A DNA stretch of 64,000 bases from Tetramitus jugosus (taxonomy: Eukaryota; Protista; Heterolobosea): positions 434,001 through 498,000 of the forward strand of contig OW569347.1 in the NCBI GenBank assembly GCA_937625935.1, given 5' to 3'. The notes beneath the pieces are model-generated. The model made no database searches. It was not told where the DNA came from and saw only the letters and a program-made list of their open reading frames with translations. Position numbers and translations under genes: made by a program. This document shows, piece after piece, positions 34,358 to 47,350 of the stretch (its first letter is position 1; each line of letters begins with the position of its first letter).

Positions 34358-34621
34358 TGTTGTCGTATTGTTATTGGGATCAATCGGAATTCTATGTTTT
34401 TGCTTAGGTCCATGCAGACTCTTTTTCAGCGAAACGAAGCCATAAATAAGAATCAGTGAACCGCTGCACAATGAGATAGCGGGGGTAAAATGTCGGGGGC
34501 CGAAAACGCCCCGGAATCTTGTAATGGAAGATTGATCGGTTCTATTCTTTCTTCCTCAAAAATAAACAACAAAATACAACCGACTCAGCCCTGATTCTGT
34601 CCAGAAAGATCATGCAAATAC

Positions 34622-37594
34622 ATGCACTCAATGAATGACACAAATTCTACCACACCACTGAACTTGTTCTGGACATGGTACCAGAACGAGCGTAAGTACT
34701 CTGTCAGCACTATCTATAACATGGGATTTGACAAAAAGAGATACAAGAACTTACGGTTGAACCATTTGGCACCCCCTGGAGAAACAGGATTGAAAATGAA
34801 TAGCATGACATTTGGTTCTCTCAAATGGTTGATCAAGTTAACGTATGACAAACGTTGCAATGAAGCTGTTAGCAATTCGCTCATTAACATTCTTGATGAC
34901 ACACTAGCACAACACTGCTACTTTAAAGATCCGACTGGATTCAACATTGAGCGAGTAGAATACAAGAGAAAAAGAAAGAGGTCGGATTGTGTGGAGAGAG
35001 AAACAATACAACCAGGAACCGAGGATGAAGTTCATCACTTCAATGAGAATTTATCATCTCAGCAAGCACCACTCGATAATTCCACACAAGCAATACCACT
35101 TTTATCTTCCAATCTTAGTTGCCCAGAGATCAAAGGCATTTTGTCCAAGGCAGATAAAATGATACCAGAGAAGCAATTTGACTGCTCAATTATGGATCTC
35201 CGATGTAGTAACTGTAAGCAGACAATCCTTGAAACCAAACCAGGTCGAAAGCATGACAAAGAACTTTCATTACTGTCAAACAAACAGCGCAACGCCAATT
35301 GTAACCGATTTGTTATATCATTCAAATGGATGTTGATGTTGCTATGTCAAATGTTCACGACAACATTAGAAGCATATTTCAAGCACTATCCGGCAGAGTT
35401 TCTTTCCATTTTAACAAGCTTTATTCATACTACACAGAAGCATCGCAAAATCGTGAATCAAATCCTAAGTGATGGATACAAAAGTTTCACTACTCATCAG
35501 CTTCTGTTTCACAAAGATAGATATTTCATATCTGATCTCACTTACTTCTCTTTCTATCACGCATTGTACCTCAACTGGCTATTCCCATCTAAAACTGAGG
35601 TACAGAATTTGAGAGGAAGTATCAACAAGACAATTTCAGATAACTGGGAAGTGAAAAAGGTTGTTGACGATCAAAACACTCATATCGGTTGGACATGCTC
35701 AATCCGTTCAGTACTGATGCATCTCATGCAAGTACAAATCCGTTACTCGCAGGATATATCCGAACCACCCAATCATATAGAGTTGGTACTCTCAGGAGAC
35801 GGACGCAAAAATGATGGAGGTCAAAATATCATTGCTCTGAAACCAATCGGTTTATCGCAGTTCGATTCTCAGAGTCGCGATTCTGTATTTCCTGTGGTGT
35901 TTTGGAAAGGAGCAGAAAAGATTGCGAGAGAGTGCCTCCAACCCGTAATTCAAATTGTTAAGCAATTATGTAACGATGGAGGATTGTCATACACCATACC
36001 AGTACCACGAGGTTCGTATGCCGCGGCATCGACTGCCTTTTCTTTTATCAAGTTCATTTGGTGCTCTGATCTTGCTTTTCTAGACACAGTATGTGATGGA
36101 GGTCTTTACAGCAGAAGTAACCATCACTTATTCTGTCCATATTGTCAGTGCAAGAAGATAGATTGTGATAAGCACTATTCAAGCAGTGACCCTAGAAAAA
36201 TCACATTCTTTGGCTTGGAAATGCCTGTTAAAATCTGTTCATTGCATTGCAAACAAGCAATAACAAGGAGATTGTTGTTGAATATGGCGTTATCCACAGA
36301 CTCCGTAGGTATCGCAGAGATAAGCAGTAAGATCCACTCTATCTCTGGTCTAGGCAACTTTGATTTCTTGATCAAGGAGAATGCGGGTCCTCGAGATGAT
36401 GATGATGATGAAGGGGCTGAATCTCAGCCTGACAGTGGAAGTGTCAGAGTGCCAAAACTCACTGGAAATCAGTGTGATGCACTGATAAAAAAGGCGGTCA
36501 TACTCTTTTCGTCATTGGATGGAACCACTGACCAAGCACTAGCCGATATATGGCTCCTTTGGTCTTTCATATGTTTTGGATACTTGGAAGCGACCAATGA
36601 TCTCTTACAGAACAAGAGAAATCTGCAAGAAGCAGAAATAATTCTCAAGAGGTTGGACACATTGGTGTACTCAAGGTTTGGAGCCGGAGCACGGATGGGT
36701 TACTACTTCCACATTGTTGTAAAGCATCTACCTTCGTTGTTGTCGTATGGATCGTTACAGCCATATTCTGGTCAAGCTTTGGAGGCACATCACCAAGTGG
36801 GCACCAGAATCCAGGAAAGAGCAGTTTTTAAAGGAACATCTGTTGGCAAAAGCAACACCCCTCATGATGTTCTCCTTCATATATTCCTTCATCCACTACG
36901 TGCTCTTTTCCTATCTGCAAATCACGATGGATGTAATTGGAATCTGCGAAGAAGTAGGAAACGGCGATGTGATGCGATCGATAGATCGATGAGAGCAGAC
37001 AACAACCTAGATACTACATTGTCAAGTGACGGTCTCATGGACTTATTAGGTGCGAACTATGATATTGAGGCCGATGAAACAGAGTCCTCGAATGATAGAG
37101 TGACTGTGGAAGAATTGTCTACAACAGAAGACATACAAGCGTCACCAACATCTTCAACTCAACAAATGGAAAGTTCACTACTCAATCATGCTAGCGAAGA
37201 ACTGGAAATCCTTGCTCAGAAGTTTGATAGACATCTCGAAAAGCGGAAGGCAGTCTTAGATATTGTTTTGAATAGAAATCTGGCATCTTACCGATTCACA
37301 ATACCACAACGTCTTCAATTTGCAAGCCAAGCTCGCCTAGGATCGGTAGAAAACTATTCCAATCCACTTCCCAATCCGGTCCTAAGTGAACGTAGAGTAG
37401 CAGATCATGTAGAGCTTGTGGAACCAGCGATTGCTCTGGAAACTTTTAGTGGAGAATCGATCGTGACTGTCACAAACCGGAGCACTAACATGGCTTTCGC
37501 ACAGCATCCATTGGGTGATCGATATCGATCTGAGATCCTCGGTCAGCACATCTGGTCCACAATCAGGCAGAAGCAGAATGGATCTCATTCTTGA
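34622..37594 (+). CDS. RAG1/Transib-like DDE transposase, 990 aa, intact
   Basis: Motifs in RAG1 order: NBD-like PGRKHDKELSLLSNKQ, SGDG (D1), CSDL (D2), CPYC, SLHC, YFHIVVKH (compare RAG1 YFHKTLAH) and SGQALEAHH (E). Confidence 0.8.
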   Translation: MHSMNDTNSTTPLNLFWTWYQNERKYSVSTIYNMGFDKKRYKNLRLNHLAPPGETGLKMNSMTFGSLKWLIKLTYDKRCNEAVSNSLINILDDTLAQHCYFKDPTGFNIERVEYKRKRKRSDCVERETIQPGTEDEVHHFNENLSSQQAPLDNSTQAIPLLSSNLSCPEIKGILSKADKMIPEKQFDCSIMDLRCSNCKQTILETKPGRKHDKELSLLSNKQRNANCNRFVISFKWMLMLLCQMFTTTLEAYFKHYPAEFLSILTSFIHTTQKHRKIVNQILSDGYKSFTTHQLLFHKDRYFISDLTYFSFYHALYLNWLFPSKTEVQNLRGSINKTISDNWEVKKVVDDQNTHIGWTCSIRSVLMHLMQVQIRYSQDISEPPNHIELVLSGDGRKNDGGQNIIALKPIGLSQFDSQSRDSVFPVVFWKGAEKIARECLQPVIQIVKQLCNDGGLSYTIPVPRGSYAAASTAFSFIKFIWCSDLAFLDTVCDGGLYSRSNHHLFCPYCQCKKIDCDKHYSSSDPRKITFFGLEMPVKICSLHCKQAITRRLLLNMALSTDSVGIAEISSKIHSISGLGNFDFLIKENAGPRDDDDDEGAESQPDSGSVRVPKLTGNQCDALIKKAVILFSSLDGTTDQALADIWLLWSFICFGYLEATNDLLQNKRNLQEAEIILKRLDTLVYSRFGAGARMGYYFHIVVKHLPSLLSYGSLQPYSGQALEAHHQVGTRIQERAVFKGTSVGKSNTPHDVLLHIFLHPLRALFLSANHDGCNWNLRRSRKRRCDAIDRSMRADNNLDTTLSSDGLMDLLGANYDIEADETESSNDRVTVEELSTTEDIQASPTSSTQQMESSLLNHASEELEILAQKFDRHLEKRKAVLDIVLNRNLASYRFTIPQRLQFASQARLGSVENYSNPLPNPVLSERRVADHVELVEPAIALETFSGESIVTVTNRSTNMAFAQHPLGDRYRSEILGQHIWSTIRQKQNGSHS

Positions 37595-37711
37595 GTTTTT
37601 TTTGGCAGATTCATGACAGTAGAAGAAGTTCTATTCTATGTCAAGGCCCTATTGTACATACGGTGCGACATCGAGAAAACTCTAGTGTGTTCGATATTGA
37701 AATTGTTTATT

Positions 37712-38212
37712 TTAGCCTGGAACGAGAAATCTTTGGTCGTTCCACATCATTGTGCAAATCTGGGTATAATTACAGTACACCCGATTGTTCATTGTATTTA
37801 CAATGAACGCAATGTACGTGTAGTAGGCGTGATACATGACTGTACCACGTTTGTAGTACTTTGATGCCCATCTACCTCCCAGATCTGGCATGCAATCGTT
37901 AAAAATAAACCACTCATGCGGCACGTTGTATTCAATTCCATCATAGGTGGCCTTTCTTTGTGTGGTTCGCACACAACATTCCGGTTGCATACGGAAAAAT
38001 TCTCGCAGTATCTCAACGGGGCAGGATGGCAGAACCAAATTTCTTCCATTCTTCAACTGTCGTGGTTGAATTCTACTCCACAATACGTCTCGTGCGTCTG
38101 CACAAAATTCGAGCATCCGATTGGTGATGTAAAAATCTCTGTACGACACATCGATAGTTTCATTTGCAACTCTGGTATCGTGGTCGGAGGGAATGTTGTC
38201 TGCACTGTTCAT
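37712..38212 (-). CDS. Unknown partner protein A of the RAG-like element (166 aa)
   Basis: Clear paralog of 38493-39278, sharing LEFC..R.VLW.R.QPRQ.K.G, MPDLGGRW.SKYYKRG..MYH.YYT.IAF.VNT..NRVY.NYTQ and FLVPG*. Confidence 0.8.
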   Translation of the reverse strand: MNSADNIPSDHDTRVANETIDVSYRDFYITNRMLEFCADARDVLWSRIQPRQLKNGRNLVLPSCPVEILREFFRMQPECCVRTTQRKATYDGIEYNVPHEWFIFNDCMPDLGGRWASKYYKRGTVMYHAYYTYIAFIVNTMNNRVYCNYTQICTMMWNDQRFLVPG

Positions 38213-38492
38213 CTTTTTGGTCGCTATTCATCGTTGTTGTCGTTAAATATCGTTGTATGGTTGGTTCGCTTTTCTTCTTTTTTTAATTTGTTGATGGTTG
38301 ATGGAATCTGAGCAAACTTCTCCCGGAGTAATTTTTTATCTCTCTGTGTTGTCACAACGAGATAATCTGATTCTCCGAGGGAAGATCCCATCAAACAAAA
38401 AAAGATGATGAATCATTGTAAAGTTGTCACTTTAACACAGGACGCAGTTTAAATTTTTTTCACCCACACAACAACAGATAAAAAGCAACAAA

Positions 38493-39278
38493 ATGCCTCG
38501 CACTAACTCTATACAAGTTGGGGTTTCGCCTCAAGAACCTTACGGTCGACCAGAAGAGAATTCATCTACTTGCACCTCCGGTGACCTGCAGGATATCATC
38601 AACCTGCTCTCTAACTCGAGAAACGACCTGCAACAAGAAGTTCGCGAACTTCACACCGAGCTTCAGCTGAAAGAAGAACTAATACTGCGTTTTCAACACG
38701 AGTATGTGAAATTGCAAGAATTAATCAGTCACATGAACGAGGAGAAAGGAAATCTAGATCAATCACGGAATTTACATCCGGAAACACCAGCAACCACACT
38801 GTCCCAGCCCGAAACGTCTCGAATTACACACGATGACCTCACTCCTTTTCGTAGGTACCATAACACACATCGCCTGTTGGAGTTTTGTGGAAACACAAGG
38901 AAAGTCCTGTGGAACCGGATGCAGCCACGTCAAATGAAGACTGGAAACGGACTACTTCTGGGTCAATGTCCAGCACCCTTACTCAAATTCTTCTTCGATC
39001 AACAGCCTTTCTACACTTCGAAGATATCGCGAAGAAAGGTGGTCCGCGATGGCTTGGAGACACACGTATCAATACAATGGTACATCTACAATGAGAAGAT
39101 GCCTGATCTGGGCGGAAGATGGTCTTCAAAATACTACAAACGTGGTAGTGAGATGTATCATTCGTACTATACTCGGATAGCTTTTGGTGTAAACACTGAA
39201 GATAACCGTGTTTATGTCAACTACACGCAGGTGACCACCTTGTTGTGGAATAACAGTTCTTTCCTAGTACCTGGCTGA
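38493..39278 (+). CDS. Unknown partner protein B: N-terminal coiled coil plus conserved ~140-aa domain
   Basis: Paralog of partner A with a heptad-rich segment LQQEVRELHTELQLKEELILRFQHEYVKLQEL. Confidence 0.8.
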   Translation: MPRTNSIQVGVSPQEPYGRPEENSSTCTSGDLQDIINLLSNSRNDLQQEVRELHTELQLKEELILRFQHEYVKLQELISHMNEEKGNLDQSRNLHPETPATTLSQPETSRITHDDLTPFRRYHNTHRLLEFCGNTRKVLWNRMQPRQMKTGNGLLLGQCPAPLLKFFFDQQPFYTSKISRRKVVRDGLETHVSIQWYIYNEKMPDLGGRWSSKYYKRGSEMYHSYYTRIAFGVNTEDNRVYVNYTQVTTLLWNNSSFLVPG

Positions 39279-39361
39279 TTCGATTGATAGTCTAACAATA
39301 CCTACGATGCTGCCATCAAAATTTTCAACGTTAATAGGTTGATTTACTTCTACCTTTCAAT

Positions 39362-42300
39362 TCAATATAAATCATTGTCAATGCCTTTTGCGTTGAATAG
39401 GAATTGAGACAAAATACCTTGAGAATGCTGGTACTGATCACCAGTCACAGGATCATTTGTGATTGCAACTAACTCTGAAGATGTCAAAGGAGATCCATCC
39501 CCATTGTTCGATACACGCACAACTTCTTCACACCCAAATGCCTGCTCTCCCGAATGATGATCAACAAGAGAATTATTATCAGTGTTTCGTTCTCCAATCG
39601 GTGCACCTTGACGCGGATTGGGGTATGTCATTTCATTCCCAAGACGCACTTGTTTCCTTACTTGGAGGCTCTCTGGAACGGTGCAGGTGTAAGTTGTTAT
39701 ATCTCGTTCCAATACAACTGAAAGAACTATGTTAAACTTATGTAGAAACTCATCTTTCTCCTTGCTTTGCGTCTCAAGTTCTTCAATATCGGTGTTCTCT
39801 AGATTGGACTGTGCTTGATTGTGAGTTTGACCGCGACATTGATCACTTTGATCTGTGTCTGGATCAGACAAATCGTCTAAGGTCACTCGAATTGCACCAT
39901 TTTCTTCCTCTTCCTCTGGTTCTAGTTCATAATTGACATCAAAGATTTCCATGAAGGAGTCGGTTGACAAGATGTTCTCCAGGTCAAGTTCACGAACAAT
40001 AAATGGTTCTTTTGCGTCCCGACGTCGCTTACGTGCTCTCCGTAGATTCCAGTTGCAACCATCATAGGAACCTGATAGATGGAGCTGGCGAATAGTGTGA
40101 AGAAATATCTGAAGCATCTTATCACAAGGAACCTTGGTGGTGCTGGATGACGAACCCTTGAAAGATGCTCTTTCCTCGATCATACAGCCATGTTGATGAT
40201 GCGCCTCTAGGGCCTGACCGGAATAAGGCTGAAGGGATCCGTGTTTTGCCAACAGTTCTGGAAGGTGCTTGACGACAATGTGGTAGTAATAGCCCATTCG
40301 GGCATTGGATCCGAAGCGAGAGTGAACAAGGATGTCCATCCGCTTCAGGATAGAGTCCAACTGATTGAGTCCTCTTTTATCCAGCTGTTGGTTCGTCGCC
40401 TCCAAATATCCGAAGCAAACAAAACACCACAACAACCATATGTCAGCCAAAGATTGATCACGAATGTTGGAGATGTTGGAGAACATAGTAGGAGCATTTC
40501 TTATTATTGCATCACATTGGGCCCCAGTTAATCTGGGGACTTCTATCTTTGCATTGTCTGGTTGACTTTGGTCATCGTCCTCAGATCCAGTGTATGAAGT
40601 GACAATTGAATCCATCTTAAATTCAAAATTGCTCAACAATGGTATCGAGCGTATTTTGTTCCTCAGATCTGAGATGCCATCAAAATCGAAACATAGAGCC
40701 ATGTTCAACAATAATCGTCGTGTTATGGCTTGTTTACAATGAAGTGTACAAATCACAACATCGATGGCATTTTGAAGGAAGATAATCTGCCGAGGCCCGT
40801 ATGGTTCAGATTGTTTGTTGCATTCGATCTTGGGACACACACAGTATGGACAGAATAGAGTGGAATTCTCCCTGCTGTACAACCCTCCATCGCATACGGT
40901 GTCCAGGAACGCCAAGTCTGAACACCATATGAAGGTGACAACAACGAACAACATCGCTCCGAGAGGATGAGTGCCATGAGCGACAGGAAGTATGTAAGAG
41001 AGTCCACCAGCCTGCATTACTTCCTTGACAACATTAAATGTTGATTCAAGCAGACCTCTGGCTATCTTCTCAGAGCCTTTCCAGAAAATAGTGGGAAAAA
41101 CTGAGTAGCGAGATTGAGTATCAAATTGAGAGAGTCCAATAGGCTTGACAGCAAAGATATTTTGGCCTCCATGATTGCTCCGTCCATCTCCAGAGAGAAC
41201 GATGCTAATTCTGGATGGAACAGAGCTGTATCTCGCTTGAACCCTCATCATCTCTTTTACAACAAACAAAAGACTACACTTCCACCCAATATGCTCACCA
41301 TCGACATCCCATACCTCTTTAACTTGCCAATTTTCCATCAGATACTTATTCAACTTCGACCTGAGACGCTGAATCTCGGTCTTTGATGGAAAGAGCCAGT
41401 TAAGAAATAGTGAATGATAAAAGCAGAAATAATTGTTATCCGAGATGAAATTTCGATCCTTGTTGAACAGCATCATATGATTGTTGAAGCTACTTGAAGC
41501 ATCTTGAACCATCTGATACACAAACAGTAGATGTTTCTTCGATGATTGAATGAATGCAGTAAGAATCGATACTGAAATCTTCAGGTTGACTCTTGAAGTA
41601 TGCGATCATCACTGTTAAAAAGCTTTGGAACAACAGAGCCAGTTGCCATTTGATTGCGATCACGAATCTTTTGGCATTAATCGACCACTGTTTGTCAGAG
41701 CATTTCGATAGTTCTTTGTCATGTTTTCTTCCGGGCTTTGGAACAAGGGTAGTACCTCCACATTGATCACATAGCATATCCAACGCGGAGCTGTCATATT
41801 CCCTTTCTTGAATCAACCGATTCGCTCTCTCGACAATATCCTTGAGTTCTTGATTTCCTGTCCTGTTGTTTCGTGTTGATAGTGATACTCGATACAGTGA
41901 TTGTTCATACTGCGAATTTTCTGTTTGTGAACCTTCAAGTTGATCATGATCCTGCTCGATTGAACCTCGCTTTCTCTTTCTTTGAATTCTAAAATTCTCT
42001 ACTTGATACCGAGTACAATCTAAATACTCACAATTGTTTGAAAGTGCCTCCTCTAAGTATTCAAGTAGTCGAGATCGAACAGATGGATCGCAGTGGGGGT
42101 CATACAATATTCTTGTCACCCATTTCAACGATCCAAACACGTGCCCATTCATTTTAATTCCTATCTCATCGAGTGGGATCAAACGATTGAATCTAATGTG
42201 CTTATGCTGCTTAAGGTCAAATGCAGCCTTAAATATTGTGCTGACAGAGTACAAGCGTTGGTTGTTGTGTATGATCCAGTAAACAGTGAATTGTGACTCA

Positions 42301-42422
42301 ATAGAAGGAGGAGGATGGATGTGTGGTGTGGTGAGTGAACTTGGTGAGGGTTCAGAGACAGATGGAAGAGTATAGCAACCAAATAGTTGAGGTGCGAATA
42401 GAAAGTGATTCATGTTTGCCAT
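39362..42422 (-). pseudogene. RAG1/Transib-like transposase B with a single +1 frameshift near 41573
   Basis: ORFs 41490-42422 and 39362-41521 together align with protein A. Removing one base restores ...EDFVSILTAFIQSSKKH..., versus EFLSILTSFIHTTQKH in A. All catalytic motifs are retained. Confidence 0.8.
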
Positions 42423-42815
42423 GGTCTTGTCTGCCTGTTTGATCTTCAGTCAACCGACAAAACATGCCCGTAAAAATAAGTTGTTTACAAAGATTCTGTG
42501 CAACTTTGCACAGAGCGATTTTCTCTCCCTATCTCATTGTGTGAGGGAAAAAAATATTCCTGTTCAGGAATACAAGCAAATAATTTACAAAGGAAGCTGT
42601 CTCTGAAGCATTCTGAGTCATGATCCTCAGGTGTTGAGAAGACTTTCACCAAATAGGTTCAGCCTTCGTCTCCCTCTACCACAGATCGATTGGCTGTGAA
42701 GGATAGAGTCCAATTGGGCTCAGCCTGACAAACTGAAGGGACCTCTCGTCTCCGTTTCATGTTGTGCACAAACTGATTTGCCTGCCTTTTTGCCGAAAAG
42801 CTGTCTATTGTCTTG

Positions 42816-43520: not shown

Positions 43521-46500
43521 TTAGCAACCAGCAATCTCCTTTGAACTCGTGAAGAGGCGTCGCATCACCTCCACACATCTCCTCTTTGTATGATCGACAA
43601 ATTGTTGGGACTTCTCCCTTGCCTTCTTCTTCTCTATTCCACTCTTCGTCAGTCCTTTGATCACTTGTTTCAGCGCCCTTGTTTCAATACCCAACATGCC
43701 AAGCATGTATTCCTTGCTAGTTTTCCTCCGCTTATTGACTAGTAATGCACCGTTGCTCCATCGTTGGTTGTCGAACCACATGTCTACTCTTTGGTCCTTG
43801 TGAAGACCCATTTTACTCAGCTTGGTGGAAACTTCCTTCACCAACAGCTTTCTGGCCATTATCGCCACCGGGCATCTAACGAGACAATGTAACACCGTTT
43901 CCTGTTCAAATTTGCATTTGGGACATAGCGTATCCATGTCCACTACTCCATAGAGATGTTGGACAACGGCCTTAGTGTGAATTGTGTGACTTTTCACCTG
44001 AGCCACAAACCATTCCAGTGCACGGTCGACCCTGAAAGGGCATCTCATAAATTTAAAATCTACAGCACCTCCTAAACACTTAGACTGTATCCACCATACC
44101 TTCTCCTCTTTCACCCTATCCCTATGTCGTCGCAAGAAGACTCGCCACAACTGTTCCTTCTCTACGACCTCAAAACTATCATTGTACATTAACCTTGGGG
44201 TAGTGTCGGCTGAATGCTCGTGATTTCCATTGCACTGTAGCATTTCAAGGTCACTTGTCAAGTAATGTATCTGCGAGAACTAATTCCAAAATTTCCATGC
44301 CTTTTGACCAATTCGCTATGCCTGATCCACTTTCCACCCACTGTCAATTGACTCCTCAGCCCTATTCCCACCTTGAACAACCTTTAGATGATGTCATTTG
44401 GCTGAGAGAGTGCCAGATTGCAACTCAGACAGTTGACCTCATTCCCACAAGAAATAGTGAGGTGGTTGGTGTGCATACGGACAGCACACCACTTAAGATA
44501 GCTATGTGCGACGAGCTCAATCCTGTTGTTGGATTGAAATACATTCTCTACCTGGAATGTTTGTAGATGCCTGATCTCCTCAAGCGTATCCAACAACAGT
44601 CTGTGAGCCTCGCCATCATGCTTCCCTTTCAGCATGTTGATGATGAACCAAGCAGTGTTCACCAGCAATGATTCCTCAAATCTACGGAGACCGAAGCCAC
44701 CATTATCGCACGCCACATGCAACAATTCTGAGGGGTACCTCCGCATTGCAACAGAACCCCGTTTGATCAATGCTTTGCCTATATGATTCACTCGGTTGAT
44801 CCACCCTGCCCCCCACTCAGTGAACTCGGAAGCGTAAAGAAACACCGGGTGGATGCATGTGTTGACGATCCTCGCTACTTGTCTGGCAGTTAGTCTCATA
44901 ATGTGGAGTCGCTTGATGACCCTTTCCACCTTGTCTCGGGCTTGCTCTTTCTGTTTGACAGTGCAACCATTTAGGTTCGTGAAGAGTCCTAGTGCCCTGA
45001 AAACTTTCCTACTTCCATTTGCAGCCACAACCACTCCATTGACCATTATATTATGGTCTGATGGTGTTTTTCCATGTTTTCTGACATACAATTCCAGCTT
45101 GGTGGGGTGCATGGTCATCTTTAACTTACCCAAAACCTCGTTCATGCGGTTTGCAGTCATCTCGATGTCATTTCTATCACTTGACATGAGATTACAATCG
45201 TCCACGTACGCAACATTCCAAATGTTTTGAGTCCCTGCCGGGTAACCCTTAGCAAGCCTGGCAGTATACAGTAGCACAGTTTGATGGACTAGAACGTACG
45301 TAGTTGGTGACAACGAATCACCCTGCCTTGTACCCTTACCTATTGGAAAACGTCGCGATAATGTTCCCGTCATCACCCGGGCCCAATTGTTTGTAACCAT
45401 ATCGTGTACCAGTCCGACGATACTACTTGGGAATCCAAAGAACGAGTACACTTCCCTGATGGCGTTGTGTGGGACAGAATCAAAAGCTTTCGCAATATCG
45501 GTCAGCAACAAATACAACTGGCTATCGTTCCTGTTTGCATGGTCGATTACACCCCTCATAATCGATAGCTTCTCTCTGATGTCCCTGAATTTCCTACCTC
45601 CTCCTTGAGTATTTGTGAATATCGAAGCCGCTTCCGCTGCCTTAGACACTCTGGTGTTAAGCAATCTGGTGAACAGCTTAGCCACTGAGCTGAGGAGGCA
45701 GATGGGCCTGTAGTTCGCAATGTCTTGTGCACTCCCTTTCTTGTACGCCGGAATAATCGTACACTCCTTCCACACGGTGGGGAACACCCCACTCACCAGT
45801 ATGTTGTTGAAAAGGTGGGCCAGCACTTCTGCTAGTTCCCAACTGTAATCTCTGCTTTCAGTCACTGGCATTTTGAGCATTTCGTTGTGAATGCCATCAG
45901 GCCCCGGGCATTTCCTATTCCTCAGCCATTTAACTTCATTACGAACTTCTTCCACCGTGATCTCCGTAAATTCCTTCTTAATCATTTCCTCCATTCTGGG
46001 AGCTTCAAGCTCACTAAGATAGCTCATGTCCGCATAGGAATGTGAGAAGGCCGACTCAAAATATTCTGCCGCCTTGCTGCTTACCTTTTCTGGGTCGGCG
46101 TGAGTCATGCCCTCTTCTTCAATGGTGTTAAGCCTGATTCGGTTAGATTTCTTTGCGCTTGCCGTAGAGAAGAACTTACTCGGGTTTACGAACTCTGATG
46201 TTCTTGCAACCCACTCCCACCGTCTGAATCTCTTACATGTGTGTCTAGTCCTCTCTTGATGCAATCTCTGATTGATTATTCCCAGTGTCGACCATACTGA
46301 CTCTCTTCCTATTTCTGTTTGTCCACCATAGTTAGTGAGTACTTTACACAAATGCTCGCCGACAGTACCGCTGACTAGATAATCGAGCACAAGTTTTCTG
46401 CTCTGGATGAGTCTTCTCACACGCCTATTATCCACCCAGCGCTTTGTAGTGCTCTGTTCGCCAAAGAACTCCACAGCCCGAGTAACCAGGACTTTGGTCA

Positions 46501-47350
46501 ACATTTCGCATTGTGTTTGTGGGTCACTCATATCCTCTATCCGTTGCTTAGACAGATCAGACAGCACTTCAGTGGCGTAGTTCGCCCATCTACTGTCCAG
46601 TTTGTTCTTGGGGAAGACCATGCTTGTTCTATCATCCTTGTCACAGCCATCAGTCTTGTGTTCCACTTCCACTGACACCTTCGTTGGTATGTGATCAGTC
46701 AGAGCCCCGTTTCTTGTGAACGCTTCTATATTTCGGACGACACTTAGAGCTGCCTTGTTGGCCCATGTAGAATCAATTCTAGATGACATAGTCCTCTTGA
46801 AGTAGGTGTGGAATTTATGCACTCCTAACACCTGGTTGATATCCTGCATGTTACAACTATACATGGAGCTGATCAGACAATTCGTATTCGGATCTTTGCG
46901 ACCCGATGTTCTGTCCTCCTTAGCGACCACTGCATTATGATCACCTCCAAATAGGACCTTACCAGATGATGCGATACTGCTCATTGTTTCTTTGACGTAG
47001 TTGTAGTGGGGAACATCAATCTTGTGTGGACCGTAATGATTAGCAATGTAAATGGTTTCACTGGCACATTCTACTCTCACCACTTGGAGGCGTTCCCCGT
47101 TGTGGACACTGCCATAACTGGTGACGTTCTTCGTGTTGATAATCGTAGCCAGATATCGACTGGGAAATTCGCATAGGATTGCATAATTCAGTGCTGCCAA
47201 TTGTTTTTGCAACCGCGTCAGTTGCGCCTGGTGTAATATTCTTGTTTCTTGCAGCAAAAGCACATCGATGTCCTCCTGCTCCAACATGTTGAGTATGTCG
47301 ACGGATTTACCAGGCAGTCCGTTGACATTGTACCACATGATTTCTAACAT
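43521..47350 (-). pseudogene. LINE ORF2 (AP endonuclease, reverse transcriptase, C-terminal CCHC); nonsense codon at 44384 and frameshift near 44265
   Basis: WYNVNGL, LLLQET, GGDHN, SRID, TDH; PGPDG, YRPICL, DIAKAFDSV, QGDSLSP, YVDD; CPKC..ETVLHCLVRC. Confidence 0.9.

Follow-up and report, generated by a model that had tools for sequence, protein, structure and literature searches.

RAG1, the enzyme that cuts antibody genes, and RAG2 are the classic example of a transposase that depends on a further subunit, and the origin of this pairing is debated. RAGL and Transib elements both generate 5-bp duplications, the former carrying a kelch-type RAG2L gene and the latter being presented as having one gene (PMC7204232; PMC9435367). 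The hosts recorded in the survey of RAG1L and Transib are bacteria, fungi, plants, animals and a pelagophyte, with no amoebae (PMC9435367), and a partner of the transposase, RAG2L, is reported only for RAGL elements, amoebae being present in neither survey (PMC9435367; PMC7204232). Here, we describe two elements in which a small conserved protein, hereafter the partner, is encoded tail to tail with a large protein of RAG1/Transib-type fold. It is rather likely that, in amoeboid protists, this partner serves a family of two-gene DNA transposons as an accessory protein that has not been described before; in the literature searched, we found no description of the partner or of this transposon family.

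Two mirror-image elements in the window

The window, i.e., the whole stretch of 64,000 nucleotides that was analysed, comes from an intron-poor eukaryotic genome of 26 Mb (56 contigs, 41% G+C). It contains two mirror-image units, element A from 34467 to 38348 and element B from 38353 to 42541, whose features are listed in Table 1. The original prediction had described the two small proteins as partners, a relation borne out by the layout, in which a large ORF converges on each small one; these large ORFs are paralogous, with 50% identity across 720 residues. The large ORF of B is frameshifted, leaving two ORFs (39362-41521 and 41490-42422). Just to the right of element B, a 988-aa ORF (44384-47350, minus strand) was judged from its translation to encode a LINE ORF2-like endonuclease-reverse transcriptase.

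Table 1. Coordinates of the genes, domains and termini of elements A and B (positions within the window)
Feature	Position	Strand	Basis and remarks
Partner gene A, 166 aa	37712..38212 (including stop)	-	ORF list; short leader and conserved domain
Conserved partner domain, copy A, 144 aa	37715..38146	-	Family alignments
Partner gene B, 261 aa	38493..39278 (including stop)	+	ORF list, own-genome search
Partner B N-terminal coiled-coil-like stretch, residues ~29-93	38577..38771	+	Weak Pfam coiled-coil matches only; absent in A
Conserved partner domain, copy B, 145 aa, sequence modelled	38841..39275	+	AF2 model
Large protein A, 990 aa, RAG1/Transib-fold DDE transposase (predicted)	34622..37594	+	Convergent with partner A
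Large protein B main ORF, 719 aa, catalytic core intact	39362..41521	-	Convergent with partner B
Large protein B N-terminal part, other frame	41490..42422	-	ORF list; own-genome match to A residues 13-292
Element A outer end, starts CACAATGAGATAG	34467..34479	+	Compared with other ends
Element A inner end, reverse complement starts CACAGAGAGATAA	38336..38348	-	Contig of run X1 stops at 38348
TTGT, four bases between the head-to-head inner ends	38349..38352		End comparison and X1 contigs
Element B inner end, starts CACAACGAGATAA	38353..38365	+	Loose X1 contig ends at 38352/38353
Element B outer end, reverse complement starts CACAATGAGATAG	42529..42541	-	End comparison

Heptamer-like CAC... termini are present on both elements, the four ends beginning with CACAATG, CACAGAG, CACAACG and CACAATG, followed by AGATA. 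Contigs of a public sequencing run of the same organism (X1) end or change at exactly 38348 and 38352/38353, which fixes the borders of the inner ends. At 38336-38365, the inner ends of A and B therefore lie head to head with the four bases TTGT between them, and in an X1 contig a B-type end directly abuts another heptamer-like end (...CATTGTG, then CACAACG) with zero bases between. The ends look bipartite and asymmetric (34467-34525, 38300-38348, 38353-38385 and 42485-42541): the partner-side ends of A and B share CTCCG.G.GAAG approximately 21-32 bp in, beyond the 13-bp tip, and the transposase-side ends share GAATCTT(T)GTAA approximately 47-58 bp in. Repeated subterminal words were not found in the terminal 160-190 bp.

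A search of the genome itself returned 18 occurrences of the small domain and 34 of the large protein. Five copies of 4206 bp, 100% identical to each other and with unrelated flanks, are found on contigs C45 (C45:142914-147119), C3, C9, C10 and C40, their borders being derived from overlapping loci. Each holds a 310-aa partner gene and a large gene, read inward from opposite ends, and the termini (CAAT at the start, ATTG at the end) follow only the looser CA...TG rule. Decayed copies are scattered across the genome; in one copy of the large protein (C17:525913-528999), a long microsatellite of dinucleotide type, read as GL/GF/VW repeats, interrupts the sequence past the first catalytic region. 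The five identical copies suggest that the element is still active and that this activity is very recent. No direct repeat of any length was detected at their borders, and no target-site duplication was found around A, B or A and B taken together. For the five copies, this points to an unusual integration for a DDE enzyme, and the missing duplications raise the question of the mode by which these elements integrate. Together with the head-to-head ends, they would fit blunt excised DNA rejoined by host end joining, as for V(D)J signal ends, and not staggered strand transfer.

The absence of target-site duplications, together with the lack of a match between the large protein and any known transposase HMM, could also be understood if the two small ORFs were lineage-specific host genes lying by chance beside a duplicated large gene. 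Nevertheless, both genes are contained in all five identical copies, decayed copies are dispersed, the termini are inverted CA...TG sequences, and the same gene pair is found in distant taxa. A chance pair of host genes is therefore extremely improbable, and we rejected it on the five identical two-gene copies with unrelated flanks.

The partner domain, its family and its predicted fold

In a BLASTP comparison, partners A and B share 81 identities over 163 positions (50%, with 71% positives; E 3e-64), and the near-identical blocks previously read from the translations, including the C-terminal FLVPG, are visible in this alignment. At the DNA level, 57% of nucleotides are identical across the domain (144 aligned codons), with pS 0.89 and pN 0.30; as pS is saturated while pN is low, dN/dS is far below 1, although the saturation of dS does not allow a numerical value to be given. 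The domain is thus under purifying selection, as had been proposed from the conservation of the proteins despite the divergence of their DNA. For the core of the large protein, the comparison between A and B gave pS 0.87 and pN 0.28.

The description of the domain as unrecognised holds as well. Sequence searches of Pfam, NCBIfam and the PDB retrieved nothing with any of the proteins, Pfam gave zero family matches in 73 domain sequences, and a PDB search with the partner-family profile returned nothing. Neither kelch repeats nor a PHD finger, both of which had been judged absent by eye, matched in copies A and B or in the sets of homologues, and the profile searches retrieved no ordinary host family and no RAG2L. 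Similarly, plant En/Spm families and Myb/SANT were not found at E<=0.01 in the 73 domain sequences or in 71 full-length homologues. Protein searches based on a word index likewise gave nothing, whether the query was the partner, the large protein or the alignment of the large protein. This reflects a limit of the method, since the partner family was recovered when eight copies from this genome were used in an exhaustive profile search: 107 representative clusters passed E<=1e-3, and 63 passed E<=1e-10. The members all have 58-383 aa and none is embedded in a long protein. Those with a species name come from Heterolobosea (Naegleria gruberi and Willaertia magna) and Amoebozoa (Heterostelium album, Synstelium polycarpum and Planoprotostelium fungivorum), and all are annotated as hypothetical except for one UniRef entry labelled "SAP domain-containing protein."

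The partner domain is often preceded by a coiled coil and rarely by a SAP motif, the notable additions in the 71 full-length homologues being one SAP domain (E 3e-7) and one fascin domain. The extra N-terminal coiled coil proposed for copy B corresponds to a stretch with weak matches to ATG16, BRE1 and DUF1664 (E 0.004-0.2). The domain itself is basic, in agreement with the original prediction, with a median pI of 9.2 and a median net charge of +6 among 73 homologues.

The AF2 model of the copy B domain, built from the 73-sequence alignment, reached a pLDDT of 96.2 and a pTM of 0.88. The chain opens with a 25-residue helix, followed by one strand, a second, short helix and a run of five long antiparallel strands with an additional short one; the C-terminal 90 residues are modelled as beta strands, where a beta-strand-like C-terminal half had been anticipated. 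Foldseek against the PDB gave a best E of 0.04 with TM <0.32, and an exhaustive aligner (VIA) run on 48,161 PDB representatives gave a best Z of 4.7, the usual background of this aligner being Z 7-8 according to the tool's own notes. The re-examined top 1000 of Foldseek yielded a best Z of 5.1, the shape search of the ESM Atlas a best TM of 0.38, and a viral structure library no match at E<=0.001. A language-model search had provided a lead to Mog1/PsbP-like sandwiches, which was rejected because DcrB (Z 4.2-4.7) and PsbP (Z 2.9) fall below the background; in the Atlas, the PsbP-like lead had a feature score of 0.93 with only 132-140 features shared. Since the modelled fold is not a kelch propeller, the partner is not RAG2-like in structure. 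With a confident model and no structural relative, it is a candidate new fold and may represent one. Its most conserved polar positions are found in the loop after the first helix (R-L-Q-P-G-x-x-K-x-G), and the sheet contributes further conserved positions, namely one proline, one tryptophan, one tyrosine and one arginine.

Affinities of the large protein

Sequence profiles do not place the large protein. The large proteins have no Pfam match at E<=1 and no match to RAG1, EnSpm or Plavaka HMMs, a search of the genome with PF12940 retrieved nothing, and a PDB search with the large-family profile retrieved no RAG1 or Transib chain. The structural model, obtained from a six-sequence alignment, is poor (pLDDT 56), yet three independent lines of comparison are concordant. 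With this model, all 46 Foldseek matches at E<=1e-3 are RAG1, BbRAGL (the amphioxus RAGL) or HzTransib (best 8.5e-7), followed by the P element transposase at 8.5e-3. The top six matches of VIA are likewise RAG1, RAGL and Transib proteins (Z 9.5-7.3, with 264-343 residues aligned; Z values of 9.5, 8.7 and 7.3 correspond to 337, 310 and 264 residues), below which come generic helical matches. In the ESM Atlas, the nearest named clusters carry the RAG1 pre-RNase_H, RNase_H, ZnC2 and ZnH2 families, with scores of 0.95-0.97 and 187-204 features shared.

Two D, a CxxC, one H, an HxxxxH and an E are invariant in six distant members of the large-protein family. In the copy A core, D 114, D 204, CxxC 226/229, HxxxxH 418/423 and E 442 occur in the order of what we take to be their mouse RAG1 equivalents, D600, D708, C727/C730, H937/H942 and E962. 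The offsets between the two rise smoothly from 486 to 520, in agreement with the range aligned by VIA (7-411 to 459-929). An aspartate run (DDD...D) is found in the insertion domain of every large protein (residues ~585-600 of large protein A, 36350-36410); speculatively, it might make contact with the basic partner. In one foreign contig, the 1232-aa large protein (L064:1921-5619) has a fungal-type Zn2Cys6 cluster (PF00172) close to its C-terminus.

To our knowledge, RAG1 and Transib are the only members of the CACTA-Mirage-Chapaev-Transib clade with solved structures, and for this reason the large protein could, by fold alone, belong to another lineage of this clade. The C(2)C and H(3-4)H motifs and the CA...TG termini are common to the whole clade (PMC12730594). 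Nevertheless, a position on the Transib/RAG1 side is favoured by the result from the Atlas, by the spacing in H(4)H and by termini of the CACAATG type. The genome also has an EnSpm/CACTA-like transposase (L070, at C29:207704-211096 and also at C21:183979-184305), which is frameshifted, displays CGFC and H(3)H, and matches Transposase_21 at E 3e-5, below the cut-off; the hhalign comparison between this sequence and the large family was not significant.

Pairing, proposed role and relation to known systems

The convergent pair of small and large genes is present at 11 loci of the genome (A, B, C16, C25, C50, C26 and the five identical copies). Five foreign contigs (Willaertia, Naegleria, two Logan assemblies and one JGI metagenome) have the partner convergent to a gene of 738-1232 aa, in each case a homologue of the large protein of the window, with stop codons between 83 bp apart and 4 bp overlapping. 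Wherever the pairing is seen, its position and orientation are unchanged and the large protein has ~700-1200 aa, so that a fixed partner of a RAG1/Transib-like transposase within TIR-bounded elements is found both in this genome and outside it. No large gene was detected near the partner in three foreign contigs (Heterostelium, Planoprotostelium and one NCBI assembly), and one further Logan contig is too short to judge the pairing.

Maximum-likelihood trees were built for ten partner domains and for the cores of the ten transposases paired with them; every well-supported clade is common to both, namely (A,B) with C16, the five-copy element with the JGI contig, and Willaertia with Naegleria and one Logan contig. 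The pairwise identities of partner and transposase correlate with r 0.88 (n 45, the pairs not being independent). The agreement of the trees and the correlation of the identities show that the two genes have accompanied each other for a very long time, changing at a similar rate.

Two intact partner genes stand alone on contig C24 (C24:163753-164400, a 276-aa frame, and C24:446800-447219, a 188-aa frame), with no large gene within 1.5 kb downstream. These solo copies may be domesticated, or may be non-autonomous elements or remnants, and their existence implies that the partner might work alone. They would suit the idea that the partner is cargo acting on the host, for example an anti-silencing protein, a regulator or an addiction factor, outside the transposition machinery; other transposon lineages do carry enzymes for host DNA, such as TET/JBP (PMC12730594). 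However, cargo genes are usually patchy in a superfamily, whereas the partner is linked to the transposase and co-diverges with it across very deep splits, never changing position or orientation. We therefore regard a cargo role as quite improbable.

Regarding expression, three soil metatranscriptomes contain contigs 90-99% alike over the partner B domain and the 3' part of large protein B. One of them covers both convergent genes, the contigs have small indels, and an origin from DNA is possible; as they do not separate the convergent genes and may include DNA, they do not prove transcription of the partner. Contigs from soil metatranscriptomes and from groundwater and soil metagenomes are 90-99% alike to element B (38808-40500), indicating that the element, or its host, has close relatives in both soil and groundwater.

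Our reconstruction of the element is as follows. Bounded by short CA...TG inverted ends, it has its transposase reading inward from one end and its partner inward from the other, the two genes meeting tail to tail. The partner would be a helper in the transposition complex, touching the transposase and/or the ends of the element, and would probably be dimeric where the coiled coil is present. A complex prediction for the transposase core and the partner domain scored 0.01, in a run in which alignments were unused and the partner fold was uncertain, so that this score speaks neither for nor against an interaction. The basic charge, the occasional N-terminal SAP and the co-divergence fit, without proving, a role in target selection, end binding or regulation.

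A narrower proposal is that the partner is mainly a sequence-specific end-binding protein, comparable to TnpA or the Myb-like protein of Harbinger, which recruits or aligns the ends with no effect on catalysis. The basic domain, the coiled coil ahead of it in many members (which would give dimers), the SAP DNA-binding motif of one member, and the second conserved block in the ends of A and B, at differing distances from the tip, are in line with it. In contrast, the fold is unlike any known DNA-binding fold, the terminal 160-190 bp have no repeated subterminal words, and copy A is devoid of the coiled coil, so that we consider this purely end-binding role unlikely. Taking the gene pairs and the models together, we think there is a reasonable case, somewhat better than even, that the partner is a new accessory subunit of a two-gene RAG1/Transib-type transposon, an analogue of RAG2 and not a homologue; it is probably the transposon's own helper in place of RAG2.

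More tentatively, and in our opinion doubtful at present, Amoebozoa and Heterolobosea could carry an old, active RAG1/Transib-type branch with its own obligatory cofactor of new fold, in a convergent layout like that of RAG1-RAG2. If true, enzymes of this kind would have acquired a small helper on at least two occasions.

Among known systems, the Myb-like protein of PIF/Harbinger offers the example of a small second protein needed beside a DDE transposase in a two-gene element (PMC12730594), but the partner has another fold, without a Myb/SANT domain, and accompanies a transposase of another superfamily. TnpA of En/Spm likewise assists a transposon as an accessory protein, in the wider CACTA-Mirage-Chapaev-Transib clade, whose transposases have C(2)C and H(3-4)H motifs and CA...TG termini in common (PMC12730594). 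The partner, however, does not match the plant En/Spm Pfam families and is encoded by a separate convergent gene. TnpA is made from the same transcription unit as its transposase. Transib elements such as HzTransib resemble the present ones in the structure match, in the order of the catalytic and zinc-binding residues and in the CACAATG-like heptamer ends of A and B. They differ in having a single gene and 5-bp duplications (PMC7204232; PMC9435367), whereas here there is a second conserved gene, no duplication and no HMM similarity.

A further parallel is with RAG2 and RAG2L, which are likewise encoded by a second gene in the element, tail to tail with a RAG1-type gene, and retained together with it in the long term (PMC7204232; PMC9435367). 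In contrast to their six-bladed kelch propeller of ~350 residues, the partner is a 145-residue alpha+beta domain with one long helix, and in contrast to their animal or pelagophyte hosts, it is found in amoebae, in elements without 5-bp duplications. If it acts as the proposed helper, the partner would be functionally analogous to the RAG2 of RAGL or the TnpA of En/Spm, unrelated to both, and a second, unrelated partner on a RAG1-type enzyme would provide an independent system in which to study the function of helper subunits.
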